Shown: positions 2,749 through 39,968 of the stretch, piece after piece
Position numbering within the stretch: the first letter of the stretch is position 1
How the letters are laid out: each line of letters begins with the position of its first letter
NCBI GenBank assembly: GCA_964252035.1
Contig: OZ176203.1
Direction: 5' to 3' (one strand)
DNA length: 64,000 bases
From: Podarcis erhardii
Taxonomy: Eukaryota
Notes under the pieces: model-generated
Seen by the model: only the letters and a program-made list of their open reading frames with translations
Databases searched by the model: none
What the model was told of the DNA's origin: nothing
Made by a program: the position numbers and the translations under genes

Positions 2749-5420
2749 TAACTGCCCCCTACCTGCAATGAAGAAGGATTATTTGAGGGAACGAATGCGC
2801 TTTGGATGTGCTTTAAAGGTGGAGTGTGTACAAAGCTTTTAGTTGCATAGCACCCGATGTCTTTCTACTTGAAATTTATTTATTTTTTACTACCCTTTCG
2901 TCGTTGTCTAATGCAGTTTCCATATTGGTTGTTGGCTGTTGTTTGGATTCTTCTTCTTTGTGCAATGCCCAGACAAGCGATAACTACGGAGCCTAATTAT
3001 TCAGTAAATAAGGAACAAGCAAACAAATAAATAAATGTGGGTGGAGGCCACAGATGACAGTTTCCTCAGGTAATTGTCATCACTAAACAGAATCCTTTTA
3101 TATGGGCCCTGCTTTCCTCTTGATTCTCTTAAGTCACTGTTGTCTCCCTTTTTCAAGAAAATGGCAGAATTGTTGCAGGGCCTGGTCCCTAATCCCAGGT
3201 GTGGAGGAGCCACATGGATCTCAGGCCTCAAAAGCCATGGTCTGCCTATAGGACCAAGTAAGGGTAAGTTTCTTGTGGTAGTATCTCCCACTTGCTTCTA
3301 GATTGCTTTCCTTGCCCTTCATAAAATATACAGACCATCCACCCAACAGCCATAGCCTCCTGAGCAGGGGGTCAACTTTCTATCTCTTGCTCCATATGCA
3401 CTAAACACTTGGTGGAATGTCATTTGCTCTGCTCCTCTGAGCTTACATTTCCATCTATCTAAAGTATTACAACAGAGTAGTCTTAAAACCACATCTTCAG
3501 AGAGACTAATGGAATAAAAGTAACATACTATGGCAGTTTTATTACCCTTAAATATGCTTTTAGTCTTCATAGGAAACATTTCCAAAATAATGTTTGAGAG
3601 ATGTAGAATGTGCTGGAATATATTTTATACACTGGGCATCTTGGGACCTCTCCAGCCCCCACTGAAGACGGTAGGAGACTTGTAGCTGTATCTAATGCAG
3701 GTTGAATCCATTCTTATTTCTGATAAATATCTTATTTATTGCTGGATGCAAGTTCGGAAGAAAACCTACATTTTTGAAAAATGATTCCAGTGTTCCATAT
3801 TTCACTAAATCTTCTGATCAGTCTCTCCCCACCCCCCACCCACCCCCCGTTTTGTCTGATAGAATACAATCCCACCTAAGTTTTTTGATGGCATTCATAG
3901 ATGGTTACAACTACTCAAGTTCAGGTACGTTAACTTATGCTTAAATATGTGATTTACAACAACGATCCATTGTTATACATGAATAAATTTTCTTTCGGGA
4001 AAGAGCATTGAGGTTAACTGTGGGGAAGGGAAGAGTTCAGACGGTTTAGTTTGCAGGACTAGAGATTAACCAAACACTACAAGTGGTACTAAATTAGGTT
4101 TTACACAGAGTAGACCCACTGCAGTTAATGAACATGCCTAAATTGGGGCTACATTTATTTCAATGAGTCTACTCTGAGTAATAATAATAGTAATTTGTTA
4201 TTTGTACTCCACCCATCTGACTAGGTTGCCCCAGCCACTCTGGACAGCTACTTAAGAGTAAAACTTAGTTGAATATCACCCTACAAACCCATTATCTCTA
4301 TTTCCCATGAACTTCTCAGGGTTGCTGTTCTATAGACCAGAGTGCTAATGGCAGAAGAGTTAGGGGAAGCAATAGTTCCACTTCAAATAAAGACATTATA
4401 CTGCACTGTAGTAACTTTACTGTATTTCATTTTTAACACAGCAATGAAGGCTACTGGTTAATATGTCATGAATACCCTGCTATATCTGGATCATTGGTCT
4501 TAATGACAGCAGTGTGGAGACTGCAATGCAAAATGAATGGCCACTGAAAGGATATTTTAACTGAAATCAGCACACAGTTATTGACCCCTATGTTGCAAAG
4601 TTAGGAAGATAATTGTATTCTAGGGGCCCAGAAGAAGAAGAAAGCATTACTGCTTTGGGTTGGTTCCCTAGTTACCTTAATCTGTTTGGGTTAGGTTTTT
4701 AAAAGTGGGTGTTTTCTTTCTTATTTGACCTGTGATTAAAAGAGCATAGGGAAAGAGCCATGCAGATTAAGATTTAATAATAGAGGATCACACCATCTGA
4801 AATTTAATGACTTCCTCCAGTTTTCCAGAATAAATAAATAGATCTTGAATTTTACATTCATTTATTTGCTATGTTGCTTTTGAGCAGTTATGCCATACTC
4901 TGAAAATAATCTATGTGCGTACTAAATAAATAACTCATAGCTGAGTTACCCAAGGAAGCAAATGTTTGAGAGCACTCTGTACCAAAATAAAGCTTCAGGC
5001 TATAGTCTCCTTGCGGTATGGACTCCAATATGGGGTGGTGACCAAAGCATATTTTGTGGTGCAGAGCTCTTCAAACACTTGTCTGTTATTCAGATTATGT
5101 CTTCACCCTTATATTGAACTAGGAACTGGAAATAAGAAATTGCTGCTCCTCTGGAGGAAAAAAAAAACAAATCAGTGAAGCATAACAGAAAGTAACCACA
5201 GCTCTTTCATATTATTATTATTATTATTATTTTAGAAAGTGATTTGGGCTCTCCATGTCTCAGCCCATCTTTAAGGTCAGCTGGATTTGAATGACTCTTT
5301 AACCACTTTCTTGTCTCAAAGCTGGGTTAAAGAATAGCGATAGCAATAATCTTCCTTTTCTCTCCAACATTTAAAGTGATGGGGAATGCACAGCTTCTAA
5401 ATTGTGGTAACATAGAGGTA

Positions 5421-5761
5421 GTGTGGTCTAAACCATAGCTGTGGTCTAAACCACTGAGCCTAGGGCTTGCCAATCAGAAGGTCGACGGTTCGAATCCCCA
5501 CAATGGGGTGAGCTCCCATTGCTCGGTCCCTGCTCCTGCCAACCTAGCAGTTTGAAAGTAGATAAATAGGTACCACTCCGGCGGGAAGGTAAACAGCGTT
5601 TCCGTGCGCTGCTCTGGTTCACCAGAAGTGGCTTAGTCATGCTGGCCACATGACCTGGAAGCTGTACGCCGGCTCCCTCGGTCAGTAAAGCGAGATGAGC
5701 GCCGCAACCCCAGAGTTGTCCATGACTGGACCTTGCGGTCAGGGGTCCCTTTACCTTTACC
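5421..5761 (+). mobile_element. Sauria SINE, 5'-truncated, 8-bp TSD TAGAGGTA
   Basis: Body matches the other copies; (TTTACC)n tail; TSD at 5413-5420 and 5762-5769. Confidence 0.92.
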
Positions 5762-6381
5762 TAGAGGTAATAGGAACAGTCGTCACCTTTTTTTCATGGC
5801 AGGCCGCTGTGTCTGCAGCTCTTTCTCAGCATTGGCATGCCATGTTAAGTCAGAAGGGAATTCGGATTTTAGATGTATGGATATATATTTGCATTTCCTT
5901 TCCTTCTCATCTTATGGTTTTACATCTCACACCTTCCCCATATATATATCTGTGGACTTAAGATAACAGTTCATGTTACCGGATAAAATGAGGTATAGTC
6001 CACTAAAGTTTATACCCTAATAAATGGGTTGTCCTTCAGGGTGCTACAGGACTATTTCTAAGTTCTGATTATGACTTATGCTTGGCATACAGTCACCAGC
6101 ACTCCCTCAGGGGCCCCTTGCCAGAAGAAAATAGATAGAAATACTACCAGAAATCCTACTGATCCTGGAATCTGAAGCTACAGATTTATGTGGGCCATAA
6201 AATATGGCTGTAGGTTTTGTTTTTAAGCGATTACTCTGTTGTTTTATCTTTTTGTAAACCGCGGTGAGGTTTTCTTCTACAATCAAGCACTATATAAATT
6301 TTATTAAATAAATACATGTGCCCCTGCCCCTTGTAAATAGGGTTGCAAAGACTGTGCCTTTCTGCAACCCAGAAATATTTT

Positions 6382-7475
6382 CTAAGAACGTAAGAACCTA
6401 AGAGTAGTCTACTGGATCAGGTCAATGGCCTGCTTAGTCCAGCATCATGTTCTTGCAGTGGTCAGCCGCATGCCTGGGGCCGAAACCAGGGTACAAAACA
6501 TGAGCACAAGAACACTCTCTCCCCTCCTATGGCTCAAGCACCTGCTGTTTGGAAGCACTGCTGCCTCCAGCTGTGGAGGTAGAGCACAGTCGTCATGTCC
6601 AGTAGACCCTGTTATCTCTCTCCTCCATTATTTTGTCCAATCATCCTCTAAAGCCATCCAGGCTTGTTGCTATCACCCCCCTCCTGAGGGAGCAAGTTCC
6701 CATAGTTTTGACTATGTGCTGCACATTAAATGTGTCCTAAACCTTCCAACATCCAGCTTCGTCCGATTTCCCATGATTTCTATAGTGCTATGGTTTTCCT
6801 AGTAGTGATGTATGGAAGTGAGAGCTGGACCATAAAGAAGGCTGATCGCCGAAGAATTGATGCTTTTGGATTATGGTGCTGGAGAAGACTCTTGAGAGTC
6901 TCATGGACTGCAAGAAGATCAAACCTATCCATTCTTAAGGAAATCAGCTCTGAGTGCTCACTGGAAGGACAGATCCTGAAGCTGAGGCTCCAATACTTTG
7001 GCCACCTCATGAGAAGAGAAGACTCCCTGGAAAAGACCCTGATGTTGGGAAAGATGGAGGGCACAAGGAGAAGGGGACGGCAGAGGACGAGATGGTTGGA
7101 CGGTGTTCTCGAAGCTACCAGCATGAGTTTGACCAAGCTGCGGGAGGCAGTGGAAGACAGGAGTGCCTGGCGTGCTCTGGTCCATGGGGTCACGAAGAGT
7201 CGGACACGACTAAACAACAAATGAGAGAGGAGGAAACACTTTTCTTTAGCTGCTTACTCCATGCAGTGCATAATTTTATAAACTTCTAACATGCCGCCAC
7301 TTCCTCGCCTCCCCCCCCCAAAAAAACTAAAAAGACCCAAATGCTGCAACCTTTCTTCATCGGGGAGTCGTTCCATCCACCTTGATCGCTTTCTCAACTC
7401 TTCAATATCCATTTTGACGCGAGGCGCCCAGAACTCTGTACGCAGCACTCCAAAAACGCACTATAGATTTGTACA
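6382..7475 (-). mobile_element. Old CR1 LINE 3' fragment (6382-6786 plus 7221-7475), split by BovB
   Basis: aagaacgtaagaac tail; the right part translates on minus to CR1 ORF2-like RWMERLPDEERLQHLGLFS. Confidence 0.7.
6787..7220 (+). mobile_element. BovB (RTE-clade LINE) 3' fragment nested in an older CR1
   Basis: Translates to ...SESWTIKKADRRRIDAFGLWCWRRLLRVSWTARRSN...HGVTKSRTRL; (CAA)n tail. Confidence 0.92.
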
Positions 7476-8420
7476 GCGCGCGGGTCGGACAGTTCCGTGT
7501 TCAGTGCCTGCGTGGACATCTCCATCCGCCGCCTTCACACCTCCAGTTCAGACCCCGGGCAAACGAGATTCCCACGCTCAGGCTCCGCTCCCCTTCGCTT
7601 CGCCTCCCCTGCGCCCCACCCGGGTGCTCGCTGCGCTCCGCCTTGCAGACGTCAACCTCGCCTCGCCAATGAGCGAGTGCTGCTACTACAGCGGGGCTGG
7701 GAGGAGGAGGAAGTCCGGAGAGCCAATGGGCTCGGAGGGATCTTTCGGGAGCGGAGAGGCACGGCGGCTCCTCCCCCGGCCCGGCCCATCCCGCGGCCCC
7801 GCGGCTTCAGCAGGAGAGCGCGGATCAGAGTTGCGCGCTCGGGTGGGAGATGCCGCTCGGGCTCCTTCTAGCTGCAGGTAAAGCCAGGGCGGGGCGGGGA
7901 GCATGCGCGCGTGTCTGGGTCTGGAGGGGCCCCGAGGCGGGCGCAAGGGCTGGCGGCAGATGGGAAAGGGGTCCCTCTGCGTGGGAAGCGCCCCTGGGCG
8001 CTCTATGCGGCAGGGGAAGCGCCCGGTTCCGCACCCACCTCGAGAGCGCACTCCCAAGACAAAAGGAAGCACACGAGACGCAAACAAAAGGTGGCTCTCT
8101 GGCGAGGGACGGATCCCACCAAGGTCACTTTTTCAGGCACTTCCTCATAACAGCCACAACTCCCTCGCTCTTTCCTTGCTCTCTTGCTAGAGTTGTTAGG
8201 ATCGCCTCCTCGCCAGCACCTCTCCCCCTCCCCCGCCACGACCCCGATCCTCTGGGGTCGTTCCAGCCCCATCTCCGTTCCGAGGAGCGCGTTACCTGCC
8301 TTTGCTACACTGTGGGTTTGGGGAAATGCAGTCCTTAAAACATCTTGCGAGGAAAAGCAGCCCTATTAAACTTGGCGGGACTGGCTTCTGAGTAGGCGCG
8401 TATCGGATCAGCTGCACGTT
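7400..8420 (+). promoter_or_regulatory. TMTC4: CpG-island promoter and non-coding first exon of TMTC4 (donor GCAG|gtaaag at 7877/7878)
   Basis: Strong CpG/GC enrichment; CCAAT boxes at 7666-7670 and 7723-7727; good splice donor at 7878. TSS not determinable from sequence. Confidence 0.8.
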
Positions 8421-8795
8421 TCCTTTCCACAATATTGCTATTAGACAATGATGTTCTTCGCAGCACTGTGCGGAACCACTTTCGATAACAGATCCAGAGG
8501 GGGAACTGGGATCTTCACCTCGTCTTTTGTCTGCAGTCACAGTGCTTGGCTCTTTTTTAAACACACGAGTTTGGATTCTTCCTTGGGGAAAGCACAAGTT
8601 CCATGGGTTTTTATTTTAAAGAATGGCCTGTGTTTATTACGGTCTGCTGTTCAGCCTAGTTGTGAATTATTATTATTTTGAAACTCTGCCATTTAAGTGG
8701 AAACTTCTGATTGGCAGAGTCTTTACTGTGGGTCTTCCATCTTTCTTCCCAAATTGTGGAAGGGGGAGGAAAGAACATTTACATGATCGTTTTAG

Positions 8796-9034
8796 AGTTT
8801 TTGATGACATGCCAGAAAGTGGCACGCATTACCCCATGCCCTGCAAGAGCTACAGAACAAAGACAACAGAAACCAGCAGACAGGCTGAAGCATGCAACCC
8901 TGTGTATGCTTACTTGGGAATAAGTCACATAGAATTTGGTAGGACTTGCTTCTGAGGAAACAGCAGCCATAGGATTGCACACCTGTGTTGGGCACAGTGT
9001 CATAATTTGTTCCAACAAATTTACCACACTGATG
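8796..9034 (+). other. TMTC4: Candidate TMTC4 5' leader exon ending in ATG (start of a long N-terminal isoform)
   Basis: ttttag acceptor ending 8795; ...CTGATG|gtgtgt donor at 9035. The ATG would be in frame with 10691-10744 (ICNQHNVGTPNFGKVSYR). Confidence 0.45.
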
Positions 9035-10744
9035 GTGTGTGTGTTCCACTCTGGAGACCTTCAGAACTCAGCAAGGAAAGAGGGCAAGATGCACTATATA
9101 CTTATGTATAAATAGGTTTCTCACCCTTGTTTTCAGAAGAGATTATACTCATTTAGTGCCGGTGGTGGTGGGGACAGGACACAAAAACAACTTCTGCAAC
9201 CAGGTCCATTATAGCAATGTTGGAAACTGCTTTCTTTCTTCCTTTAAAAGAACTACAATTCTGTTTTAACAGCCTCCCCTTTCCCACAACACATCTAGCT
9301 ATTTATTTTTGGGGCCAATAGGTTGGTTTAAAAGCCCAGGGAATTGGAATATTAGCATACTGGGAGGAAGGTTGCTGTTAGCTATTGTATGCCACTTCAT
9401 GTATTTTTTATAGGTACTTTTGTAGGGGACATTGCTATAGTAACAAGGGCTCACTTCTGGACTGCATTAATAGCTGCGCACAACAAGTAGGTCCAGTTGG
9501 TCTTTCCAGCAAGCACTTTGTTTTTAGTGGGCATCGTTTGCAAGTCCAGTAGTGAGCAACATAAAAAAAAATTCCATGCTGGAAAACAAAATACGAAAAA
9601 CAACACCACATTATGGTGCATAATGACTTCAAAGATAAAAAAGAAGAGGAAAACAAACCACTTATGTAGTATGATAAACAGGGAGGTGAGGATAGAGGGT
9701 CTAAATTCTGCACCCTAAAATTTCAAAGTTGGGGGGGGGGGATAGATCTGGTTAAACTTGTTGGTTTTGGAGATGCTAGGCCAGAGGGTAATGGAGATAC
9801 AGGAAGGAAGGTGAACCTTAGAAAATATTCTTCAGTCAGGCTAAAGGCTCTTCCAGTCTTCCACTTGTCCCGTGTTGAGAAAGCACAAGTCCAAGTGATT
9901 TTCTGCTTGTTATCTGTTATAACTGTAAGATGTAGAAATCCTAACGTAACAATAGCTTCTTGCACTGTGGGCTTCCCCACTCTCAACGGCTTTGGCACAC
10001 CCATTTCTCAATGAACTTGACATTGCAGGAGACTGGACATGATATGCACAGGTATCTTGTGGGTAACAGTTTCTGGATGCTGCCATTGGAAGATGCTGCC
10101 TGAGAACCATGTGGAAGTGCTTTGAACATATTTAGTTTTGCTTTGCTCATCATCTTAATTAGGGGTGGGTAGACCCATACTTCCAAATCCACTCCAAATC
10201 CACTCTAGAATAAATAGACTAATTTCCAGCATGCCTTTTGGATCCAGATATTCCATAACCTGAGTGGATATGAGCAGTCATTTGCCAAGTGGTAACATAA
10301 CCACAGAATGCATTTAACGGCATGGTCCTGCCAAGCAATGATATAAAAACCACACATCCGTAGCCAGCAGGGAAGCCTTGGGGTCAGCTTTTCCCAACCT
10401 GGTTCCTCCTGGGGATGGGGCTTGAGAGTCCCTGTTCCCATTAACCCTGAGCATTGACAATCCTGGCTGAAAGTTGTAGTTCCAAACATCTGTAAGGCAC
10501 CAGTTTAGGAATGGCTGCTTTGAATGCTGAAAGAAAGTTTTCTTCTTCTCCCCCTCCTCCCCAGACTACTAGTTCACCATAAATAACACCCACCCCTAGG
10601 TGTAGGCAGGCTACAAATGGTGCAGGTTTTTTTTTTTTGTAAAAAGGCTGAGCTAGCTGTTTATAAATATATACATCCTATTTCTTTCAGATTTGCAACC
10701 AGCATAATGTTGGCACTCCAAATTTTGGAAAGGTATCGTACAGA

Positions 10745-10906
10745 ATGGCACAGGCAGACAGTAACCTGGACCATGACATACCACTACTGCCCCTTCCAGC
10801 ACACTGGGCCAAAAGTGTTGTGGGACTCCTTTCCTTCATCTGCTTTGCAAACAGCTACAATGGGGACTTTGTCTTTGATGACTCCGAAGCTATAATCAAC
10901 AATAAG
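10745..10906 (+). CDS. TMTC4: TMTC4 coding exon 1 ([10 protein letters not shown]...[10 protein letters not shown]); exon acceptor at 10690
   Basis: tttctttcag acceptor 10681-10690, ATG 10745, donor AAG|gttggt at 10907; contains the DD motif. Confidence 0.95.
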
Positions 10907-13900
10907 GTTGGTGTTTTACCAGTTGGGGGCCTTACAAGATCAGGGCTTGTAAATAGCCATTCACCTAGCAATCTGTCTTGAGTAAGAATCTCCTCCAGCA
11001 AAGAGGTAGGGAAAGTTTTACTAGGGTTACTAACTGCTGGTGGCAAGCACCAGCCTCAAAAAGCTGACTCCCCTGCTGTGATATGTATACATGCACAGTC
11101 CAAAAAAGCCAAGAAGTATGCTTTTTCTTGTGATTTATGCAAATTTGGTCAATTAAAACTCATTTAGTTAATCAGCTTTTTAAAAAATGGTTGGCAGCTC
11201 TAACTTCTAGGGATTACAGGAAAGTTTGTTGTTGTTTTGGCCGCAAAACACATGTGGAGGTAGGTTAGTAAAACTCCTTGTGGAATAGTAATCTCTGTGG
11301 ACCAAATAATATATATTGTGACTGTGTACACAGCAGAGTGTTGAGGCACACATAGGTCACACAGATCTGATTTTTTTCCCCTATCCACTTTTGTAGATGT
11401 TTCTTTGCACGCGAGCATTTTCAATTGAACAGTATCTCAGAGTTTCCCATACACACAGGTGGTTGGAGCTTAATGGGAAGCGCTGGGTGTTGTTTGTGCC
11501 TTTCGTTCAATTTGCACTTCCCAGCCTTCCCCATGTCCCGGAAATCTGAGGTCCATTTGGGGCATGTGCACAGGTATTTGTTTACTTGTGCACATGTTAT
11601 CTTTTTTTAAAAAAAAAAAAAAAACTTGAATTATCAGACTTGCACAAAACAGCAAGTTCAAAAACAAAAAAATCCCATCTGTGACACCTCGACCCACCAG
11701 CAACCCACTGAGATACGTTCCCCCAATGGCAATAGGATAGATGCGCTCAGAAAAACTTCACCATGCATGTGAAAAAACCTTTCCCACACATTGCACTTCA
11801 GTACATCTGCATTATCTGCAGAGTGGGGAAATTCAAATTTAATTGGATGAGGACAACATCGCATGAACGATACATAAATCATGCACATATGGGATGCATC
11901 AAATCCACTTCAGACTCCTATGTGTCCGCAACCCATGTTAAAGCTTTACCCTGTGCATGTCTACTCAGAAATAAGGCCCATTGAATTAAACGAGACTTAA
12001 CACCCAGGTAAGTGGGACGCGGGTGGCGCTGTGGGTTAAACCACAGAGCCTTGGGCTTGCCAATCAGAAGGTCAGCGGTTCGAATCCCCGTGACAGTGTG
12101 AGCTCCCGTTGTTTGGTCCCTGCTCCTGCCCACCTAGCAGTTCGAAAGCACGTCAAAGTGCAAGTAGATAAATAGGTACCGCTCTCGTGGGAAGGTAAAC
12201 GGTGTTTCCGTGCACTGCTCTGGTTTGTCAGAAGCGGCTTAGTCATGCTGGCCACATGACCCAGAAGCTGTACACCGGCTCCCTTGGCCAATAAAGCGAG
12301 ATGAGCGCCGTGTGCGAGATAACGATCTTGATAGCTTGATCGTTGAGCCGTGTACTCAGACAGCTTTACGATCTCAATCAGTCATTTGCAGCGTCCGGCA
12401 CGCTTCCTTCTAGCTGCGCACGTAAGTCTGCTGTCTCTTTGGCCACGGCTCAGCAGAGTGGCTTACAGCGGTGTAAAAACAGTCTTTTTCTCCCTTGCTC
12501 CATGCAAGCATACACAGACAGATCCGTCTATTTACAGCTTTTATTCAAACATTTGTCCATCACTGCTTGCAGCCATGTTAAAACATGTCCGTCTCTCTCA
12601 AGACACACAGAGAGAACAACAAGATACAGTCTCCTCCCAGACTCCTCCCAGCTTCTAAAGCTGACGTCGGAAAGTGACGCACAGTTCAGAACACTTAACC
12701 AGTTAAGTTCTGAACTCCCACACACCCCCTTGCGTCGCTTTCTGACAAAACCTGTGTAACATCTTCAGCAACACCCTGTGAGATCAATCCCTTCCCCAAT
12801 GCCTTGCGCCCTACCTTGGCGTACCTGTTGGGCATCTGTGGAATCACCTCACAACTCTCAGAATCGCACTGTGCGAAACTTACCCACGTACCTGTGGCCT
12901 GGTACCTCTCAGGTGGAATACCCTTGGTTGTGCGACTGGATCGCCTAGGCACAAACTCTGGTGTTTCCTCTGGCTCACTGTCACCAGCAGGTGTGTCCTC
13001 TGCATCACGGGTTTCCCCCTCTGACTTAAAGCGTCTTCGAATCCTCTCCATTACACTTACAGGAGAACTAGGCTCACTCTTGGGCTGTCCTCTCCTAACA
13101 ACTTGTGGAGACACCCCACCCTGCTCCTGACCCTGGTCAGTGACCTGGTCGTCATCAGCAGACTCAGCCTCTTCTTCCTCCTCACCAGAACTGTCCTCTG
13201 GATCAGAGAGACATTCTGAAAGAATATCACGCCTGACAGGAGTCTTTGACTTTACATCCTCCTGACAAAAATCAGCGTGTTTACTGATCAACACCTTACT
13301 CTGATCACCTGACGGATATGCAAATCTCCATGCACGAGCATCTGGCTCATACCCACAGAAGATCATTTTCTGGACTTTGGCTCCATCTGGCCCTTGCAAA
13401 GCCTTAGGCACAGGGACAACCGCAGGAGATCCAAACTTGCGCAGAAAGTGAACCTGGGGTTTGCGGCCATTTAACAACGAGTACGGTGTGTCACCTACCA
13501 GTGAGTTGTAGACACGATTCCAGGTAAATGACACACATCGGATTCCCTCCAGCCAAAACTTTGGAGGTAACCTGGCTTCTTTCAGCATCACCTGTCCAGC
13601 CTTAACCAGAGCTTCACTTCTCAGCTCTGCCACCCCCCTCTTACTGGGTGAAGTAACTGTGTGACGTATCCCTCTTCTGTGAAAGAACTGCTGCAAAGCA
13701 GAACCAGTGTACCTAGCATTTCTGTCACTGACGATTGCTTGAACCCTGGTGGAGAATCTCAGTTCCACCCCCTCAACCCAGCTCTTGATCAGCTGTGCTG
13801 CATCCTCCCTGGATTTGAGGCCGTGGGTCCAGGTGCTCTGCGAAAAATCATCCAAAAAAGTTAGCAGAAACCTGGCCCCTCCCAGACTTGGTTCCTTGAC

Positions 13901-16900
13901 AGGACTGGCCAAATCTATGTGAACCAGCTCAAAAGGTTTAGTGGTTACCCGTTCCACCTTTGGGTAACTGCACCCTTTCACCTTTGCTTGCTTGCAAGTG
14001 TCACAGTTAATGGCACTTCTGCAATCTCGAATCTTACAACCTGTGGAAACCTCGGGTAGAACCTGCAAGTCTTCTACAGAACCATGAATGGTTCTCCCAT
14101 GCCAAACACAAGCACATGACACATGAGCGGGAATTGTAGCACGCTGGTTGGGAACTGTAGCACGCTGCGCCTGTGCTCTCTCAACCTTCCCCTCACCCCC
14201 AAGAGACGTCTTAAGAATGAAAAGATCATTCTGCCCCTTCTTAACCGTGGCAAGTAACCTCCCTCCTCTGGAGATTGTGCAGACATCATTTTCAAAACAA
14301 ACTTTGAACCCCTTACTTAACAAATAAGGCACAGATAACAAACAATGATGCGCCTCCGGAACAATACAAAACTCCATCCTTTCCTGCAAAACAGAAAGGA
14401 AAACGTTAGTGACAGTTTTAATCTGGGTTCTCTGTCCATTTGCGAACATAACAGTTTGTCCGGCCGGAATTGCCGTGCAATTCCCCATCTTGACTGCAGA
14501 TGTCTCTGGAACCATGTTGCGGTTAGCTGTAGAGTCGATGACAAAGCTAAGCTTGGAATTTTCCACACAACTGTTCTCAAACAAGGCCATGCAGGCAGTT
14601 GTTTGAAAAGACTCTTCCTGTTGTTTACCACGACCACCTGGCTCAGTTCCACGCCTGCCTGTCTTCCCAGGCCTGTTGCCATGGAAACCCGCCTGGTTCC
14701 CATGAGAAGTGTCCTTGCAAACATCCTGCATCGGCTCTGTGCTCCGGTGGGGGCAGCTGCCATGCAGACGTTGTATTCCAGTGGAAAAACACTGCCCGGG
14801 GCTCCTCCCAGCTGGCCTGGCCTTCCTCCTTCTGGAACGGCACCTCCCACCAGCCTGGCCCCTGCTGAAGTTGCTCTCCGCTTCAGCAACAGTGGAAAGT
14901 TTCTTAAACTTGCCTTTGGAACTCTTCGCCCCCCCGATCTGCCCAACAGTGCTCCTTGAGACTGAAGTACCGGGAACTGGGGCCGCAGCCATCTTGGGGC
15001 TCTCCATTTCTTCTCCAGGGCCCTGGCCTCCTGCTGCAGTTTCACACAAACTTCGCAGCACCTTCCAGGCAGCCCCTGGTGTCTGTACACCTTCCAAATG
15101 GGGTCTCAGTGAAGCATCAACGCATGCTCTGAGCATATTCAGCTCTTGTTGCATTCTCTGCTTGCCATCTCCAGGCACCGCAGATTCACAGCCTGCTTCA
15201 GCTGGCTCTGACTGGCTTCCTTCCCAAAGCCCAGTGACCAAGAACCAACCCCTGACTCTTCTGCTCCAGGTTGCCCAACTTGTTAAAGTGAGCTTTTCCA
15301 CCGGCATATCCTGGCTCTCTGCCATTTTCTTCCCGTTCTCCCAAGGGGGCCCAAGCTTACTTACGATCAGGTACAGCTTCTCTGCCTCACCCTTCCGTGG
15401 AGAAACGACAGCAGCTGCGTCTCAGCTTTTAGCTCCAGCCAGCTCTCTGTATCTCAGCAGCAATCTTGCCTCTCGGAAGCAGGCAAAAACTCCCTCTGCT
15501 TCCCGGCATTAGGCTAGACTCAAGGAATGCAGCTTCCAACCTCCAGCTAGCTTCCGTGCCGACTTCAAAGCGTTCCTGGAGCTCACACCGACTGTTTTAC
15601 GAGCGTTTACTGACCCCCCATAACCTGTGCGAGATAACGATCTTGATAGCTTGATCGTTGAGCCGTGTACTCAGACAGCTTTACGATCTCAATCAGTCAT
15701 TTGCAGCGTCCGGCACGCTTCCTTCTAGCTGCGCACGTAAGTCTGCTGTCTCTTTGGCCACGGCTCAGCAGAGTGGCTTACAGCGGTGTAAAAACAGTCT
15801 TTTTCTCCCTTGCTCCATGCAAGCATACACAGACAGATCCGTCTATTTACAGCTTTTATTCAAACATTTGTCCATCACTGCTTGCAGCCATGTTAAAACA
15901 TGTCCGTCTCTCTCAAGACACACAGAGAGAACAACAAGATACAGTCTCCTCCCAGACTCCTCCCAGCTTCTAAAGCTGACGTCGGAAAGTGACGCACAGT
16001 TCAGAACACTTAACCAGTTAAGTTCTGAACTCCCACACGCCGCAACCCCAGAGTCGGTCACGACTGGACCTAATGGTCCCTTTACCTTTTTAAGTGTGAC
16101 AATTGTGTGTTTGTGTATTTCCTACAAAACCCATAGTGAGGTAAATTAATACAACTCTTTGTGTGTTTCTAAGACTTGTGGACTTAGGAAGTTGTACACT
16201 GTTTTAAAGCTTTAATTGATTAGCTATAATTTAGTAAAGAAGAAAAAAAAGATTAATTGTTGTTCTCCACCTTATATTTGCAAGGAAAGGACATTCTGTG
16301 AACAGTGGTCTTCTATAGGGCAGTCACTGCACTAAAGACCTCTTAGTCACATTTAACTAATCATGTGGATCTTAACCAGTCACTTGATTAATGAATTGCT
16401 ACAATTGGAACAGAAGGCATATGAATAAAACAATACTTCTGAAGAAAAACAGCATATATTAGCCCAGTTTCACATCACATTAAACTGTATTATAAAACAA
16501 ACTAGATTTTAATAGGAAGGAGGAGCGTGTTGCTTCACGCTGTTCAGAAGTTCTCGTGGCACTCTTGCCTGAGTCCTTGCTGCTACTGAGCCACAAACAA
16601 TACAAGCCAGAGTCTGGCTTGTCATGTTGTATGAATCTGAGCTGGTGCGGTTTCTTTCCCCAAAAACAAGTGACAGGTGGTAAGCCAAGAGCAAACCTTG
16701 GTCCCTGCTTGTGGTTTGTTTGGGGAAACAAACCGCACACTTGGGTTTCAACAGCATGACAAACCAGAATCTGACTTGCTTCATTCACAATGCAACAGCA
16801 GCAGGAGGGCGAGGAGGAAAAGCGCTGCGGGAACTTTTGAGCATCATCCACCAACATTCTGCTTGATCACATTAAACAATAGTTTATTTTAATCTGTGGT

Positions 16901-22900: not shown

Positions 22901-25900
22901 GCTGTGGTTTACTAGTCAGAATGATGGTTAGAACGATAAAATGGAACAATTTCCATTATCTCTATGCTTTAGAAAAGTGTTTCTCATACTTAGCCTGCCA
23001 GCTGTTTTCAGACTACAATTCCCATCATCTCTGACCACTGGCCTTGCTAGCTAGGGATGATGGGATTTGTAGTCCAAAAACAGCGGGAAGACCAAAGTTT
23101 GGGAAATGCTGCTTTAAACTGTAATCATTCTTCAAAACGACAAGAACTTCTTTAAAAATAATATCTCTGGCATGATAGAGTGGTTCTAGGAAATCCAGAT
23201 TCAACCCCCACCCCTCCAGCAATGAATCTCAGTAGATGGCCTTGTGGCAGTCACCATTTCTTAGTCTTTCCTACCTCATTGGGTTGGTTTGAGGGCAAAA
23301 TGAATGGGTAGGCAAGGAACCTTGTAAGTTGCTTTGAGTTCCTTAAGGGGAAATGTGGCATGCCAATGTAGTAGACAAATCTCTGGGTTTACTCAGTGCA
23401 GAACTGTTCTTGGTTTACCTCTGTTAAAGATTAAGATTTTGACAATGCTATAAACTTGTGTCGTTTCAGGACCTCAGGGCAGAAACCCCACTTGGTGAAC
23501 TGTGGCATCATGACTTTTGGGGGAGCAAACTCAGTAGCAATACCAGCCATAAATCTTATCGACCGCTTACTGTATTAACTTTCAGGTGAGATGCTGTCAG
23601 GCTCCACTTAAGACATTTAAATGGGGAGGGGGGCATTAAAAGGAAGTAGAATGTACTGAGATGCTACCTTTAACATGGAGGGAAGTTTCATTTGTGCTCT
23701 TATGTGCTGCTACTCTACCCATGAAGCCAGCTTCCTGTAACCAAACTCTTATAACTGTTTAGGATCACAACATGTGTAACAGTCCCAAATCTCTCGCAAA
23801 GAAAATATCCTGCCATGCTTTTTCTTCCTGGTAGGGACAGGAGGAGTATCACATAGACGTCAAAGGTCACTTCTTGGTTACAGAGGACCATGGAGGTGCA
23901 TCAAGCTAGTTCTGAACAACCAAACGTCACACATCTCGACACACCCACACGTCACCATGCATATTTTCCAATATTTTTAATGAAGGGTTTTTTTTAATTG
24001 ACACAACTTTGTAGGTCCTCTGAAAATGTATAACCACTTAAGTGAAATGGGAAGTCATATGATGAGAGTGTGATGATTGAGGAAAGATACTTGCCATCAC
24101 ACATAATATAATAAATGATACGTTGTGCTGAAGAAGCAAACTCTAGTGAGTGGTTTTCAAACACAACACCCTTACTGCTTTGGCACACGATTTCTACTCT
24201 TCTTTCCTTTAGCATATAACTTTCTTTATGAATGAATGGCAGAATGCCCTGGAGGTGGGGAGAGAAAAAGCAGGAATCGTGGCCGGCAGAACTGCATACA
24301 CTTTTTGCACAGGCCCATCTATTATTCCAGTCTCCTGTGTCAACAGATGGAAGACCAGCACAGAACAACCCAAAGCATGTGTCTCTGACAGGGAGCAGGT
24401 GTGTTGCAAAGGTGTATCCAATTCTCCTTCTCTTCCCCGCCTCCTAAAAAAATAAAAAAGCATCACGCAGACACCTTACTTTATCCCTCTCTGACTCAAT
24501 CTTGCATATGAAACACAGCACTGAGCATCTGGAGTTGCTGATGGGAAAGAGTGGAAAACTGGATTTATAAATGTATTTTCTAAGGGGCACCTTAGCCAGG
24601 AAAATCTGTGTGCCATTGAAAGGAGAGTCCCTGTTTGCACTAGTGTATTCAATCTTTTCCTCCTCTCGCCCACAGTCTTCTTATTAAGGAGTACTTAATT
24701 GCTGGGAACATTGAAAGCTGCCTTATAGCGAAGACATCTTCCTACTATTCACACATTGCTCTAGCACTGGAATAAGTTCTGGAACTGCAGGTGGTATTCA
24801 ACTAAGTTTTACTTGGGAGTAGACCTATTGAAATTAACATACCTAACTTCCTCATTAATTTCAGTGGGTCTGCTCTGGAGTAAAACATAGTTGAATACCA
24901 CCCTGTGACCTTGAAAGCTCTGGCTCAAAACCAGCGCTCCTTTTGAGATATTGCAGAGAAGGGAAAAATGAGTGCATAAAAAAAAGGAGGAGTTGAGCAA
25001 GAGGGAAAGAAAATGAACTGAAAAGGAATGACTGAATGGAGAAGAGCACATTTAGGAGGGGAAGGGAGTTGGCTTCCTATCCTCTTCAGCAACATGTTCT
25101 TGTTGCTGGGCCCAATGTTAAGGTGCCTACCTGTGTGTGCCCCTCTTCCAGAAGCAGAGCCAAATGATGGCTTCCCAGCAGGTGCTTCACTGCCGCTTAC
25201 CGGGAGAGGTGGGCAAGGCAACAGGAAAGTCAGTAGAATGCAGGTGCACCAGCAGAACCAATCCAGTGCTCTCACTGGTGTGCCCACTTTTGCCTTCCCC
25301 CTCTCTCCCGGTAAGCAGCGATGACTCCCTTGCCTTGTGGCTCCACCCCAATGGAAGAGCTGCTCCTGCTCTCTTCATAACTTGCTTCCACTGTGCATCA
25401 ATAATAACTAGTTTGACACTGCTGTCTTTATGAATACATCCAGATTTATTCAGAATTTATTTTTTTAAAAGTATTTGTGCATTTTAATCTATTCACTTGT
25501 CGTAATTTCTAACATCAGTGTTTTCCCCCCCTTGTGTAGGATTAATTACCTTTTAGCTGGAGGCTTCTACCCATTGGGCTTTCATGTCGTCAATATAATA
25601 CTCCATTGTGCTATCTCTGTCTTAATTGTTGATGTCTTCTCAATATTATTGGGTGGGCTGCAGTACACCAGTAAAGGAAGACGGCTAAACTTTGTCCCCA
25701 AATCATCCCTGCTCGCGGCTTTGCTGTTTGCTGTACATCCAGTTCACACTGAATGTGTAAGTACTTCACGATTTAAGTATTAAAAGCTCAAAAACCCAGA
25801 GTCCATTAACAATATTTAATCTTCCTTATCCTTTCAAATAAATGTATTATGCAGTCCATAAGTGTGGGGTGGGTGTGAATGTATACACACACACACACAC

Positions 25901-28900
25901 ACACACACAAATTGTGTACATTTGCATGTGCTTTGTATTGATGCAACCGTGCTTTTTTGTTCTTTTGGGGTTTGTTTGTTTTTTGCACATGACTAATCCT
26001 AACTTGTGCTAGGAGAAGCCAGTGCTAGGATTTCTGCTAGTGCAGTGGAACTCCCCCCCCCCCCATGTCCCTGTGCACCCTTCCTAGATCTGCTCCAGAG
26101 AGCTGGGCGAACCCTCATAGCAGCACGTGGGGGAATGAGAGGGGAGATAGTTCAATGTGGCAACTCTCTTATGTTTTGTGGGTCTGGTTTTTAGTTTTGT
26201 TTTTTAGATTCATATTTATATATCTCCTGCTCTTACATGGAGTTCCCAGTAGTCTCCCATCTCCCCCCATGTAAGCACCTGCTTAGTTTCAGTAAGGTTA
26301 TAGCAGGGATTGCCAATGTGATGTCCTCCAGATTTTGCTGGACTACATCTCCCTACATCTATGACCATTGGTCATGTTGGCTGGAGTGAGAATGAATTGG
26401 AGTCCAACAACGTCTCAATTGCATCACATTGACTCCCCCTGGATTTTTGAATCTGGTCTTCAGACTACTCACTGGATACCTGTTCTTTTAATAGCTAACT
26501 TTGCTGCTACTTCATAAGTTCATGCACCTCACTTTTCACATTGTAGGTCTTTGCTAAATGAAAGTGAATTTCTGTTGAGAATTCTTAATTTTGCAGAAGC
26601 TGATAGGTTGGGTTTTTTTTTTTAACACCTGATGCATTTAATGGCAGCTATCGTGGTACAATAATATCAGAGTGTAAAAACATGCAAAATCTGGAGATGA
26701 TGAAAAGCAAGTTGCTTTTGAAATAGCAACTGTATTGATTTTCCACATAAATGACATATTTTGACAAATTATTATTAGAATCTGTTTCCAGTGGAGTAGT
26801 CTAGTTTCTTTTGTGCTGGTGGATATAAATGGAAGGAATCTTAAGACTTTTCATATATAAAATGGTTGTAGAAAGACTTGTTCTTCATAGTGTTTTCACT
26901 TCTCAGCGAGTCATGGGTTTGGTTCCATAGGTGATATATTTGGCTTGGGCTAAGGAGATATCGCTCCAAAATACCCATTCACTAAACAATGGGTTGAAGC
27001 TGTAGAAACCATTTTTGTGAGGTTTTATTTTTCTTGCAAAAGCTGTTGCTTTGGAGGGCACAAAAAATTCCACAAGACCCCCTTCTTTCCAGTATTTTGC
27101 ACATTCCCCTGCATCCTTGTCTACATCCACTGTCTCCTGCCCCCTCCCCTTTGTCAAGCCTCTCTTTGTCCCTATGGTGAGTGTTGGGATATGGATCTTA
27201 GTGGTCCTCAAAGGCCACTTAGGAGAGAGGAGAAGGCTCAGCTGTCCAATGGCAGTGTAGAGAGGATTTGGGCTCAGAGAGGGAATGCCGTACAGCCCAA
27301 AGGAGAATCCACTTCTTCTTTGAGCCCACTTCTTTCTACCTGCTCCCTGGAGATAAAAGGATGATAGCTATCCTTTTATCCAAAGGTGACTGTTGAAAGA
27401 GTTTTGTAGACTCTTGTTTAGACTGAGCACAGTCAGCCAGCACAGTTGACTTCATTGTTCCACCAGCAGTATCTGCAGGGACTAGCATGAAAACATTAGC
27501 CTTGAGAAGGGACCTGTGCCATTGATTGATGAAGCCGGTTTTGAACATATTTGAACAAGGATGAGGGGGATTGTTTTGACCTCCCTGGTATTTTCCTGCC
27601 AGAGTAGGGGGGTTCCGTAAGTGCCGTCTCCTATCTTACATGCCCCCATTCAAACTCACATATCTAGAATTTGCGTAGTGTTTAAACGTCTTATCCAAGG
27701 GCTCTTTATACGTGCAGGAACTCTTTATTTTGACTTCCAGCATGGAAAAGGGCTACCACTTAATGAGGATGGGTTCAACCCAGCTAAAGTTAACTGCTCT
27801 TAAAGGCTCATTGATTCCAACAAGAGCTGATGAAGCCTTTGGTTAATTCTCTCATATTGAGATCAAGGGGACTTCAACATGCTTCACTTGGGCTGTATTG
27901 TGGCCACTGTTCACAAATCCCTGGTGGCGTTGATGCAACGGTTTTTTAAAAAAGCAATTAGCCTTCCACACTACTTCACTTGAGGGGAAACTTCTATTTT
28001 GGTAATTAAATCCCTTTTCTTCTCTTTTTCAAGATCGCTGGGATTGTTGGCAGAGCAGACCTGCTGTGCGCCCTGTTCTTTTTATTGTCTTTCCTTGGCT
28101 ACTGCAAGGCGTTTAGAGAAAGTAAGTACTTGAACACACACCATCGGTTTCTGAGCAGATCAGTCTGTTAGAGCACCACCAAAACAATGAAAATTAGTAT
28201 CTAATTAATATATGGTGCTGAGAGATCAAAGTGCTCCCAGTTTGTGTCACCAGTTCCCCATCTCTCTAATGTTGCATGTAGGAAGTAGTGTATGAATTAA
28301 GTGCTTGCACGTATATCTGCCCATGACCTTTTCTGTAACTGGAAGAATCATTGGAATTGGAGAGGGAAAGGGTATATAGTGCACATATATGTGAAATTTA
28401 TGGACTATTCACATGTGTTTTTAATTTCATTTTGTTGCCAGCCTCCTTAGGGACCTCTGTGTGGGTTGAAACACAGGACAGAATTTTAATGAATATTTTT
28501 GATGGCCTAAGTGCATGATGGCCAGCATCCTAAAAAGAGCCCTGCTGGATGAGATCAAAGAGCCATCCAGTCCAGCCGACTCTTTCCTACAGGGATGAAC
28601 CAGATGCCTCAGGGGAAGCCTCCTAGCAGGATATTTTTGTTTTCCAACAGCTGATAATCAGAGTCATGTTGCTGCTGATCCTAGAGGAAGTGTGCAGCCA
28701 TAATGATTATGGTCACTGTTACCCTTATACTTCATGAATTGGTCAGCTTATAAGTAAGATACATGTGTGTATAGCTCTCTATGCAAGTCCTACTTCACAT
28801 AAAATACTTCTACATATATGAAGCAGCCTAAAAGAGATGTGATATATGGTTAGAAGAATTATGAATGAGAAGAAACCTTTCCAGATGATACACACTTGAC

Positions 28901-31900
28901 TGAAAAACCACATGGAGGCTAGTAATTCATAGACTGGTACCAGGATGGAATGAGGATTGTGTCAGGATTATGGTCTGTGCTTTTTCTCTGGGGGCACTCA
29001 AGGGTATGCAGTACTGGCACCTCCCCGGCAAATGTTAAAGGTGTGGCACTTAATGTAACAACTTCATTGTGAGTACCAGCACCCTTTTTCTTAGAAAAAA
29101 GCACTGATTGCGTTCCAGGCATCGTGCCTAAAGCCAAAATCATATATAGTCAAAACAAAGTCATTTTTTCCCAGGATCCCATCCTGCCCCCTTTCCAGCC
29201 TATTTTTATTTTTTGCCATGCGTGTAAAGCTGAATGTGCACAAGTTAAATGCACATTAAGTTGTAAAATTTCCTGGTTGAAGACTAGGAGACAGTCTCAA
29301 ACCTGAGCTCTCTAACACCATACAGCCCCATAGGGAAAGGCCTTTTCCTTTCTACCTGCCTCTCCTCAGTGAATACTTGTGAGGTGAGGAGAATCTCAGG
29401 CCCATGGACCTCTCCCCAGGCCAAACCTTTCTCCAGCCCTGCTCCAGGCAACTCCCCTGTGTACTTTAGCCTGAATGGAATGTGTCATTGAACTGTGATA
29501 ATGCTTCCTGCCTGAATAAAGGATGGAGATATTTGTGTGGTGTATATCTAGAATCCTCTTAACTTTTGTATCGCTGGAATGTAACCTACTGTAACAAAGT
29601 CCATTGCTTTGCCTTCTTTCTCCCGTGGTTCGCAACTACCACTGGCATGTGGCCCCCAGATGTTTTCCTATAAGGCAATGTGGCCCTCAGTTTCCCCTCC
29701 CAGGGATACACTGCAACATTTTATGTCAAGTCACATTTTTGTTTATGTATGGTCACTGCTTCATCAATTCATATGATTTGTGTCAGATACTGGGTAGTGC
29801 TATGGTACAAATCAAGAGCCGTCTCTGCTCTTACACATTAACCTTTGGAATCAAAGCTGCCTATTAATTGCTAGAGGGAGAACCCAGGCTTTAGATGTAA
29901 ACGTTCAGCCAAGCCTTCGACCCAAATAGACCTCAGTCCCACAATGACTTCATTGGAGCATAAAATGAATGTACAAGTTGCATGGCCTCACAGTATGAAT
30001 TTAATCTATTTCTGTAAACTAGATTCTCTTATATAAAATGACAGAAACACTTGTGGGCATTTAGCTTTCTGGAACAGGAATCAAATGCTTTCCGCAAATC
30101 TTTGGCACGGATTACACTTGTGGCCATCTGGTGAGGGTGGCAGAGTGCCTTCTCACAATATGGTGCACCAGTTTAAACTCGGTTCAGGTGCCAACCAGGA
30201 ATGAGTTCCATTCTCTGAAAGGAGATCGTGGTGGGAGAAAGCAGCATTGTTGTAGGGAGTGTGCTTTGTTAAGCTGATTAGCACACTTGGCATGTGTGCG
30301 ACCAGAGTAATAGCTGGCACTTGTTCATTGCTTTACATTTTCGGTGCTATTGATTGAGAATCAAAAGTTAAATTGACTATTTGGATCTGTTGGACTTTAT
30401 ATTCTGGGGGTTTTTATAAGGTTTTTTTTAATAAGTTTGTATGATGCCCACTTTGGGGATGAGAATGAAGAATGTGCATATACAAAAAAATGTATATACA
30501 AATGTATACAATTTTCAAACCTTGAACATCAGTGTGCTTTTTTAGCATAGATCTGTATTCCCATTTAGAGCGAAGATTGATGCTGGGCCCAAGAATCTTA
30601 GAAATGAAATGTATTTACCGGTACTTTTTGCACATCACTTTCTAAAGGTTTAGGATGAGTTGAAAAGATTCCCATAGTGAACTGGTCTAGATGTTGCTTT
30701 TGCCATATGTAGTATAGGGGTCTGCATGCATTTATTATTATTTATTTTATGATTACATTTATATCTCACTTTTCCTTCAAGAAGGTCAGTGTGGCACATA
30801 CACACAGCTACCCCCTTCCACATGTTATCCTCTCAACATCCCTGTGAAGTAGGTTAGGCTGGGACAGCGTGACTGGCCCAAGGTCATCCATTGAGTTTCA
30901 TGGCTGAATGGGGTTTGGAAGTTGAGTTGTCCTAGTCCAGTACTTTGACTCTCATACATGTATTGAGCCTTACCACAAATCTTGTTTGGGAGCATTTATT
31001 TATACCCCGCCCTCCCCAGCCAAGGCCAGGCTCAGGGCGGCTAACAAGCAATAATAAAAATAAGTTGAATGACTACAACTTAAAAACAAAATTAAAATAC
31101 AACATTAAAATATTGAAACATTAAAATATTAAAATGTAGCCTCATTGCAGGAGGAGAAAGGAAAAGAAAAAAGAAAGGGGAAGGGAATCAAATTGGCTCC
31201 AAGCCACAGGCCCTGCGGAAAGAAATCAGATCCTGCAGGGCCCTGGTCTCATGAGGCAGAGCGTTCCACCAGGCCGGAGCCAGAGTTGAAAAGGCCCTGG
31301 CTCTGGTTGAAGCCAATCTAACTTCCTTAGGGCCCGGGACCACTAGGGTGTTGCTATTTATGGACCTTGAGGCTCTCTGTGGGGCATACCGGGAGAGGCG
31401 GTCCCGTAGGTACGAGGGTCCTAGGCCGTGAAGGGCTTTAAAGGTCAAAACCAGCACCTATAATGTAAGCACTATTTTCCTTATTCAGGAAAACATACAG
31501 GTGTACAAACATACAGGTAAACAGGACAACTAGCAGATTGTGGGGAGTATGTGTTCAGACCAAGTGAATGGTGCAGGGGGAAGGTTTAAATCCCACCATC
31601 CAATGCAGTGATCCTCATCCCGTTCAGAACTCCAAGACTGCTTTGAAAATAAATGAAAAAAGAAATGAGGCCCACTCATTGATCTCCATTATTTTGTCTC
31701 GTTTGACCCTTATAAGTAACGTTAATTAATTAATTATTAATGTTCCTTTCCGACGAACCAAGAGACATTTATTTTGCACTTTAGGTGGGTATCCATATTG
31801 GAGCACAGAATGTGAAGTGAGAACAGGTCCTCTGTTTGTGACTTTGAAATCAGTAGCATTATGGAGTTGGCAAATGGAAGGGTTTTCTGAAGTCACTGTT

Positions 31901-39914: not shown

Positions 39915-39968
<54 letters not shown>

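Follow-up and report, generated by a model that had tools for sequence, protein, structure and literature searches.

The stretch of DNA considered here, referred to as the window, comprises 64,000 nucleotides (nt) of the genome of the lizard Podarcis erhardii (assembly GCA_964252035.1, contig OZ176203.1) and carries, at 12311-16037 on the minus strand, a Ty1/copia-type retrotransposon that encodes a long polyprotein but no reverse transcriptase (RT). The two long terminal repeats (LTRs), the 5' copy at 15626..16037 and the 3' copy at 12311..12722, are 412 bp long, run from TG to CA and are 100% identical, with 0 mismatches over 412 bp. A 5-bp target site duplication (TSD), CGCCG, flanks the element at 16038..16042 on the 5' side and at 12306..12310 on what is, in the minus-strand reading, the 3' side. 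The primer binding site (PBS), GGTTATGGGGGGTCAG, lies at 15625-15610, at the 5' LTR and at the start of a 300-nt leader (15326..15625), and the polypurine tract (PPT) region, GCAAGGGGGTG, lies at 12723..12733, at the 3' LTR; these LTR ends, TSD, PBS and PPT are those of a Ty1/copia element. Between the LTRs are 2903 nt, of which the leader and a single ATG-initiated open reading frame (ORF) of 2631 nt, encoding 876 amino acids (aa) without an internal stop (12695..15325, read from 15325 down to 12695), leave no room for RT. All of these parts had been reported in a preliminary description made from the sequence alone, and all were found again. That description had, however, confined the ORF to the interior ahead of the PPT, and in fact the frame passes through the PPT and stops 28 nt inside the 3' LTR, the first 28 nt of which supply its last 9 codons and the stop.

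The element interrupts a copy of a short interspersed element (SINE) that occupies 12014..12310 and resumes at 16038-16078, with the poly-T/A-rich end of this SINE at about 12013. Among the Logan contigs of four sequencing runs are SINE copies without the element, whose joints rebuild the uninterrupted SINE with 12305 joined to 16038 and CGCCG present just once, as in the SINE consensus across the joint; because these contigs skip exactly the element and one TSD, they confirm the insertion boundaries and the TSD independently. An empty allele at the locus was considered as their source and set aside, since the joints derive from other copies of the host SINE and speak to the boundaries only. 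The SINE family itself is extremely abundant: in each of the four species examined its summed contig depth reaches the millions, where unique sequence has about 80. The absence of any difference between the two 412-nt LTRs indicates a young insertion: if neutral change is taken to proceed at about 1e-9 per site per year, which is our own assumption, one difference would be expected after about 1.2 million years (My), and the 95% bound is a few My.

The ORF reads as a truncated Gag followed by a protease-like domain, a three-part integrase-like region and an N-terminal remnant of the RT portion. The Gag remnant (aa 1-200; 14726..15325) retains copia Gag homology over its N-terminal ~100 aa, at 26% identity to canonical Gag (E=2e-12), while the capsid core of ~85 aa is deleted, a basic low-complexity stretch stands in its place and the CCHC zinc knuckle is broken. 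Pfam gives no Gag match in this ORF, and no match of any kind in its first 267 aa, so that the Gag of the window copy, earlier described as intact, is recognizable only in part. Nor is it a canonical Gag thrown out of frame, a possibility that was examined and rejected: the blastx homology lies in the ORF's own frame and is merely distant and interrupted by the deletion. Downstream are a protease-like beta-barrel (aa 256-375; 14201..14560), to which a weak, sub-threshold Pol_BBD match at aa 262-340 corresponds in position, the HHCC zinc-binding region of the integrase N-terminus (aa 405-450; 13976..14113) with H, H, C and C all kept, the integrase catalytic core (Pfam rve, aa 462-560; 13646..13942) and the SH3-like C-terminal domain of the integrase (Pfam SH3_retrovirus, aa 620-689; 13259..13468). 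The last recognizable segment, at 12776..12943, consists of the boundary motif between integrase and RT and about 40 codons with homology to the stretch that immediately precedes the RVT_2 domain of an autonomous relative.

For aa 245-700, an AlphaFold2 model based on an alignment of 33 sequences reaches a mean predicted local distance difference test (pLDDT) score of 81.7 and comprises a beta-barrel (predicted with high confidence), a helical zinc-binding module, a core with the RNase H fold and a second barrel, of SH3-like type. The best Foldseek matches to this model are the integrases and intasomes of prototype foamy virus (PFV), Rous sarcoma virus (RSV) and mouse mammary tumor virus (MMTV), with the catalytic core matching the PFV and RSV enzymes. 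Neither RVT_2 nor RNase H has a Pfam match in the ORF, and a tblastn search with the RT-RNase H portion of the autonomous relative P0153, introduced below, found no match in any frame of the window; the claim that the element lacks RT and RNase H was therefore borne out.

A second copy of the same structure was found in Podarcis muralis. Word-based protein searches and an exhaustive HMMER search together yielded just one close relative of the ORF product, matching query residues 580-869 at 81% identity, odd C-terminal tail included; high-copy repeats were evidently masked before annotation, so the lack of further protein matches says nothing about copy number. The match (P0004) is RefSeq XP_077785850.1, 'uncharacterized protein LOC144327940 [Podarcis muralis]', and its locus on OZ076959.1 (L002) contains an element with identical LTRs of 425 bp at 7394-7818 and 10895-11319, the TSD ACAGT, the PBS GGTTATGGAGGTCAGC and the PPT ACAAGGGGGGGG. 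Its single ORF of 954 aa (8084-10948) likewise runs through the PPT into the LTR, by 53 nt where the window copy does so by 28 nt. The RefSeq annotation, at 10001-10948 of the locus, covers only the last 315 of the 954 codons. On this ORF Pfam finds Retrotran_gag_2, a CCHC knuckle, rve and SH3_retrovirus and no RT, and the tblastn search that was negative in the window was negative here also. A CRAL-TRIO/spectrin/RhoGEF/PH gene is called on the opposite strand over the full extent of the locus, and the element is probably intronic in this RhoGEF-family gene.

The two copies, which occupy distinct sites with different TSDs (CGCCG and ACAGT), are collinear from just after the zinc knuckle to the PPT, where they share 83.6% nucleotide identity by blastn with gaps counted and 86.9% in the codon alignment, a divergence of 13%. 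The LTRs and leaders are homologous and just 66.5% identical, and no alignment of the two Gag regions could be obtained at the DNA level. Between them the copies display the domains and order of copia elements, with rve and SH3_retrovirus in the window, Retrotran_gag_2 in L002, a pre-RT segment after the integrase and a place in the copia polyprotein clade.

Both copies have enzyme domains that are remodeled at positions which hardly vary elsewhere, as judged against 39 homologous copia polyproteins. The protease motif D-S-G-A-S-x-H, whose G is present in 36 of the 39 and whose H is present in 37, reads D-S-T-A-N-R-N in the window and D-S-A-A-N-R-N in L002. In the integrase core the catalytic D, D and E are kept; however, the D-35-E spacing found in 38/39 homologues has become D-32-E through a 3-residue deletion, and residues invariant in 36-39 of the 39 have been replaced, namely R, G and E of RSDNGxE, N of QQNG and the R after the catalytic E, together with the N-R that follows. 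As these changes are common to both copies, they must be old. The canonical D[ST]G protease and D,D35E integrase of an autonomous element are hence absent (DST in the window, DSA in L002, D-32-E in both), and of the "integrase-centred" polyprotein proposed in the preliminary description, the presence of integrase-like domains stands while their function, like that of the protease, is doubtful.

How the RT region was lost can be read from a comparison with P0153, a protein of 1376 aa from Podarcis lilfordi with Gag, protease, rve, SH3 and RVT_2, which is the closest autonomous relative found. Its locus (L003; OX395127.1, 5406-10131) has a 5' LTR at ~5406-5813, the PBS core GGTTATGGAAG and the TSD GGGCG. 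The gene is annotated as 'Retrovirus-related Pol polyprotein from transposon TNT 1-94'; of the element's 3' end nothing is left but the final 26 nt of the 3' LTR (10072-10097), and the annotated C-terminus runs into LTR and flank. In a three-way alignment, the tail of the RT-less ORFs after the motif ...RRS.R.TKG.PPERY is homologous to residues ~895-943 of P0153, in which RVT_2 begins at 948, and about 17 further codons separate the end of this homology from the PPT. Since the homology stops where RVT_2 starts, and the PPT follows so soon after, a single deletion took RT and RNase H together. Its 3' breakpoint can be placed only within ~50 nt before the PPT, because L003 is without its own 3' end. 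The window copy and L002 have this junction in common, and they differ there as much as elsewhere in the ORF (87.6% nucleotide identity against 86.9%), which means that the deletion predates the split of the two copies and was not recently spread by recombination.

Two other candidates were rejected along the way. Right after the PPERY boundary motif, at 12892-12878 on the minus strand, a donor-like CAG is followed by GTACGTGGGTAAGT, partly conserved in L002 as GTGCGTGGATAAGT; an origin through a retrotransposed spliced RNA was nevertheless discounted, as homology to the autonomous element runs ~40 codons past the donor-like CAG and GTACGT..GTAAGT, the motif is not conserved in L002 and it has no match with the deletion breakpoint. 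A further apparent RT-less ORF, on a Logan contig of ERR14656775 (L001, 1-4586), proved to come from an autonomous copia element that had been assembled in circularly permuted form, with RVT_2 at 2-1321. This contig has the order RT-RNase H, ~590 nt of presumably collapsed LTR, and Gag-protease-integrase, and is 34-38% identical to the window ORF; its Gag-protease-integrase ORF ends at 4234 and a new ORF begins at 4391, integrase and RT being in separate frames or interrupted.

The frame of the RT-less copies is under purifying selection. Over the 665 codons that could be aligned (aa 200-867 of the window ORF), the window copy and L002 differ at 262 nucleotides, distributed as 79/64/119 over the three codon positions, with a nonsynonymous divergence (dN) of 0.107, a synonymous divergence (dS) of 0.290 and a ratio (omega) of 0.37 (bootstrap 95% confidence interval 0.28-0.49) instead of a value near 1. 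When the same number of changes was placed at random in a neutral simulation, the sequences acquired 9.5 stops on average and 0/5000 remained stop-free. The coding insertions and deletions (indels) between the two copies are all multiples of three (3, 3, 27, 9, 3, 3 and 3 nt). The LTRs being identical within each copy, this divergence arose almost wholly before the insertions, along replicating RT-less lineages. With P0153 as outgroup, 25 amino-acid changes are specific to the window copy and 17 to L002 (p=0.28), so that neither branch stands out in its rate of protein change.

Sequencing runs gave a similar picture. In the run that is probably from the source species, the frequent indels among the best-supported ones listed all fall in the LTRs or leader, and the 2.6-kb ORF has none of them. 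For three other species, the ORF indels among those listed are -1/+1 pairs 4-6 nt apart that keep the frame. Two such pairs in the integrase core, at 13639/13645 and 13674/13678, represent compensated frameshifts in many relatives in these three species.

The family is also abundant, as judged from summed contig depth, which is not itself a copy number. In the presumed source-species run (X1), the unique flank has a contig depth of ~79-80, while depth summed over the element interior ranges from ~11,000 to 236,000 and is typically ~50,000; it is 47,000-66,000 at the junction segment (12749, 12757) and ~23,000-40,000 over the peculiar Gag remnant of the window copy. These values suggest that the family, this junction and this Gag variant included, numbers some hundreds of copies in the source species. 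In the three other species (runs X4, X6 and X8), the part from protease through integrase to tail has 150-2000 times the unique depth and the window-type LTR and Gag variant only 20-70 times, a contrast indicating that subfamilies differ between species. The diverged junction common to two copies, the omega of 0.37 and the high depth together uphold the earlier suggestion of a long-lived RT-less lineage rather than a one-off deletion.

The history of the lineage has been uneven. In the protein tree the window copy and L002 form a 100/100 clade, sister to P0153/P0001/P0005, with a stem of 1.1 substitutions per site where the paths of the latter three from the same node measure 0.7-0.8; the long stem points to a burst of protein change with constraint afterwards. 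The Gag of L002 has a different affinity, as its amino-acid identity to P0153 Gag is 88% in the codon alignment and ~96% over the first 210 aa, and its nucleotide identity 85-91%, with an omega of 0.17, while the L002 protease-integrase region is 28-55% identical to P0153 with synonymous sites saturated. The Gag remnant of the window copy, for its part, is as distant from P0153 as the window protease is. On the simplest reading of these sequences, the window remnant would be the lineage's original Gag in a decayed form, and the L002 sublineage would have swapped its Gag through recombination with a P0153-like autonomous element. Recombination among LTR retroelements is normally template switching between two RNAs in one particle. 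Because such a Gag exchange normally needs co-packaging, the presence of RT-less RNA in particles of the P0153-like family is indirectly indicated.

The signals needed for copying fit the same partner in part. The PBS core GGTTATGG directly follows the LTR in the window copy, L002 and L003, and the first 9 nt of the full site (GGTTATGGGGGGTCAG in the window) are presumably complementary to the anticodon arm of the initiator tRNA-Met, as in Drosophila copia. The 5' terminus of the LTR, TGTGG(G)AGTT..GAAC, is similar in the RT-less copies and L003. At the 3' terminus the RT-less copies have ..CACA and L003, a single and damaged copy, has ..CAAA. Taken together, the shared PBS, the similar 5' terminus of the LTR and the recombinant Gag point indirectly to a P0153-like element as a helper of the RT-less lineage. 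In the leaders of all three elements, which are otherwise poorly conserved, a splice-donor-like GT[A/G]AGTA, followed by GCTT..CCCC, lies just upstream of the Gag ATG (GTAAGTA at 15363-15355 in the window, ~8050 in L002 and ~5970 in L003); this motif may be a splice donor, or a packaging or dimerization element.

As to the surroundings, no second copy of any part of the element is present elsewhere within the 64-kb window, and neither tRNA genes nor Rfam families were found around the element. The only other ORFs above 180 aa in the window are at 7291-7881 (+) and 40941-41615 (-), neither with a Pfam match.

The reading that we favor, with a probability of roughly 0.7, is that the window holds a very young insertion of an established, multi-copy, non-autonomous lacertid Ty1/copia lineage, which is copied by a helper and has kept its polyprotein for a cis-acting role. 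The lineage would have arisen through one ancestral deletion that began at the first residues of RVT_2, ended ~17 codons before the PPT and took out RT-RNase H entirely. It would have left the cis machinery of LTRs, tRNA-type PBS, PPT and leader together with one ORF in which the Gag remnant is fused to a protease-like barrel, an integrase-like protein of three domains and ~40 pre-RT residues, and which ends, apparently by accident, inside the 3' LTR. Reverse transcription would then be performed in trans by the RT-RNase H of an autonomous copia element, inside the helper's particles; processing and integration would very probably be supplied in trans too, as would the capsid for copies such as the one in the window. 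In cis, the element would need its LTR ends, PBS and PPT and presumably its leader. The P0153-like family would be a helper or co-packaging partner, and would have given a complete Gag to the Podarcis L002 sublineage by template-switch recombination.

As for why the ORF has been retained, it is suggested with moderate confidence that its product acts on its own RNA or cDNA as a Gag-Pol-like adaptor, entering helper particles or binding its own ends, and not as an active protease or integrase. This idea is preferred because constraint is stronger on the non-catalytic integrase domains and because the mouse IAP I-delta-1 elements, discussed below, offer a precedent. A bolder version, which we regard as unlikely, has the lineage as a satellite retroelement whose pseudo-enzyme polyprotein, with a dead protease and a dead integrase, serves as an adaptor for loading the satellite's RNA or cDNA into the particles or intasome of the helper, and which is maybe engaged in mutual complementation with other defective copia lineages of the same genome; if true, a vertebrate would thereby harbor a multipartite retrotransposon system.

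Several observations pull the other way. Only two full-length copies have been read base by base, and the larger number is drawn from summed depth. In the three other species, depth drops ~100-fold from 12813 to 12757, an effect that may be due to divergence of the pre-PPT and LTR sequence, such as L002 shows, or to autonomous siblings, and part of the protease-integrase depth in those species could come from an autonomous sibling not among the elements sampled. Runs guessed to be RNA, from a related species, contain 5-7% of the interior words, and no run recorded as RNA has the element. An autonomous element with a closely related protease-integrase region was not among the relatives found, and the LTR bodies of the RT-less copies are alignable over only ~45% with that of P0153, whose only copy is 3'-truncated. 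The adaptor role draws on analogy, and the retention of HHCC and of D, D and E would suit an active, though unusual, integrase.

This last point is the core of the best surviving alternative, an unlikely one in our view, in which the element is semi-autonomous: its polyprotein would include a functional integrase tailored to the element's own LTR ends, L002-like sublineages would perhaps make Gag as well, and only RT-RNase H and protease processing would be borrowed. Besides the complete set of HHCC, D, D and E residues, it can draw on the three integrase domains, which fold confidently and match intasome structures, on the LTR termini of the window copy and L002, whose difference from those of P0153 could require a matched integrase, and on the canonical Gag and CCHC knuckle of L002. 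Omega, when taken by domain, bears on it in both directions, though the segments are short and the differences suggestive only: the value is lowest in the HHCC region (0.19) and low in the C-terminal SH3 part (0.29), so that constraint is strongest on the zinc-binding and DNA-binding modules, but it is highest in the catalytic core (0.56), the domain in which the D-E spacing of 32 and the loss of near-invariant residues are found. A protease motif without its G and H makes self-processing doubtful, and the window copy is without a Gag core even though it belongs to an abundant subfamily.

Further removed is the proposal that the ORF is irrelevant, the element being a parasitic deletion derivative whose open frame is an ancestral imprint or answers a need at the RNA level, such as avoiding a long untranslated 3' region. 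The window copy did transpose with a truncated Gag and with a protease and integrase that look catalytically compromised, the ORF ends accidentally, 28 or 53 nt into unrelated LTR sequence, and frequent recombination in this group means that segments can differ in history. This proposal is nonetheless very improbable, as the 13% divergence postdates the loss of RT and was accompanied by an omega of 0.37, an excess of third-position changes, in-frame indels only and 0 stops where ~9.5 were expected; an RNA-level need for translation would, by itself, leave amino-acid replacements unconstrained. Hardly credible at all is an artefact or a one-off, that is, an autonomous element collapsed or mis-joined during assembly, or a lone copy that was dead on arrival and is one clean deletion away from its parent, for although young repeats assemble poorly and no single contig spans the element, the same RT-less architecture and junction, with its own TSD and identical LTRs, recur 13% diverged in the independent chromosome-level assembly of Podarcis muralis, the junction in the source species has a depth comparable to that of the neighboring coding sequence in an interior several hundred times deeper than the unique flank, and the LTRs, TSD and frame of the window copy are all clean.

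The favored reading, that of a helper-dependent lineage with a selected polyprotein, finds its closest parallels outside reptiles. The preliminary description had listed the familiar non-autonomous LTR derivatives as non-coding, Gag-only or without Gag; this list was incomplete, as the Athila elements with Gag or Gag and Env, Sabrina_SA with Gag and protease and the gag-pol fusions of IAP I-delta-1 are all protein-coding precedents. In Arabidopsis, Athila includes RT-less families with intact ORFs under purifying selection that encode Gag or Gag and Env and no pol (Marco & Marin 2008; PMC2410132), and new Athila lineages arise via recombination between distant families and depend on pol-encoding relatives (PMC2410132). 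The lizard lineage resembles them in comprising whole RT-less families with selected ORFs and inter-family recombination. However, Athila is a plant Ty3/gypsy group that has lost all of pol, integrase included, whereas the lizard element is a vertebrate copia that has kept protease- and integrase-like domains, has lost only RT-RNase H and can dispense with Gag.

Wheat provides a second parallel with RLG_Sabrina_SA, termed 'semi-autonomous' and encoding Gag and protease, and RLG_Quinta, encoding Gag and DUF1, whose partners Wilma and Cereba are recognized by a common PBS and LTR termini despite little other similarity, in a long co-evolution (PMC9744471, PMC11302176). These too are non-autonomous LTR families with high copy numbers and an intact partial ORF, but they are plant gypsy elements without integrase and with a plausibly functional Gag, while the lizard lineage has remodeled enzymes and matches the wheat signs of partnership in part. 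The third parallel is the mouse intracisternal A-particle (IAP) element I-delta-1, in which, according to a review that cites Saito et al. 2008, a fusion protein made by deletion acts in cis, Gag and Pol are supplied in trans and full-length copies are outdone (PMC6466679). There, as here, an internal deletion has created a novel fusion ORF in a non-autonomous element that needs proteins in trans; I-delta-1 is a recent form of an endogenous retrovirus with part of gag and pol deleted and RT kept, in contrast to the diverged RT-less lineage of the lizards. Sugar beet families, in turn, have kept remnants of decayed domains (PMC13570524).

With TR-GAG, LARD/TRIM and BARE-2 the lizard lineage has in common that it is an LTR derivative apparently mobilized in trans with conserved ends, PBS and PPT. 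TR-GAG is Gag-only, however, LARD and TRIM are non-coding and BARE-2 is without a Gag start but has pol, so that none combines a Gag remnant, protease and integrase while lacking RT-RNase H; the 876-aa ORF with protease- and integrase-like domains sets the window copy apart from elements whose interior is non-coding or Gag-only. No family that keeps protease and integrase yet is precisely without RT-RNase H is described in the literature searched, nor does a paper there treat Podarcis and copia elements together, the coverage of that search being incomplete. The nearest known relative thus remains P0153, which is in the same clade and shares the PBS core, a similar LTR 5' terminus, a 5-bp TSD and a Gag ~90% identical to that of L002; it differs in encoding RVT_2 and RNase H, in the canonical DSG motif of its protease and the D-35-E spacing of its integrase, and in a protease-integrase region just 30-50% identical to that of the RT-less lineage.

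What emerges is apparently a vertebrate copia family of hundreds of copies that has been active within roughly the last few My. For annotation this matters in a practical way, as parts of such copies stand in RefSeq under the name 'uncharacterized protein', and surveys of transposable elements that are based on RT would miss the family altogether. It also amounts to a natural experiment on what a retroelement needs in cis and what it can obtain in trans, on why the parasites of parasites keep coding and on how modules are reshuffled by recombination within particles. Non-autonomous LTR elements with selected ORFs have been documented mainly in plants, where the retained protein is Gag; in these lizards only RT-RNase H has been lost, altered protease- and integrase-like domains have been kept, and it is Gag that has turned out to be expendable or swappable.

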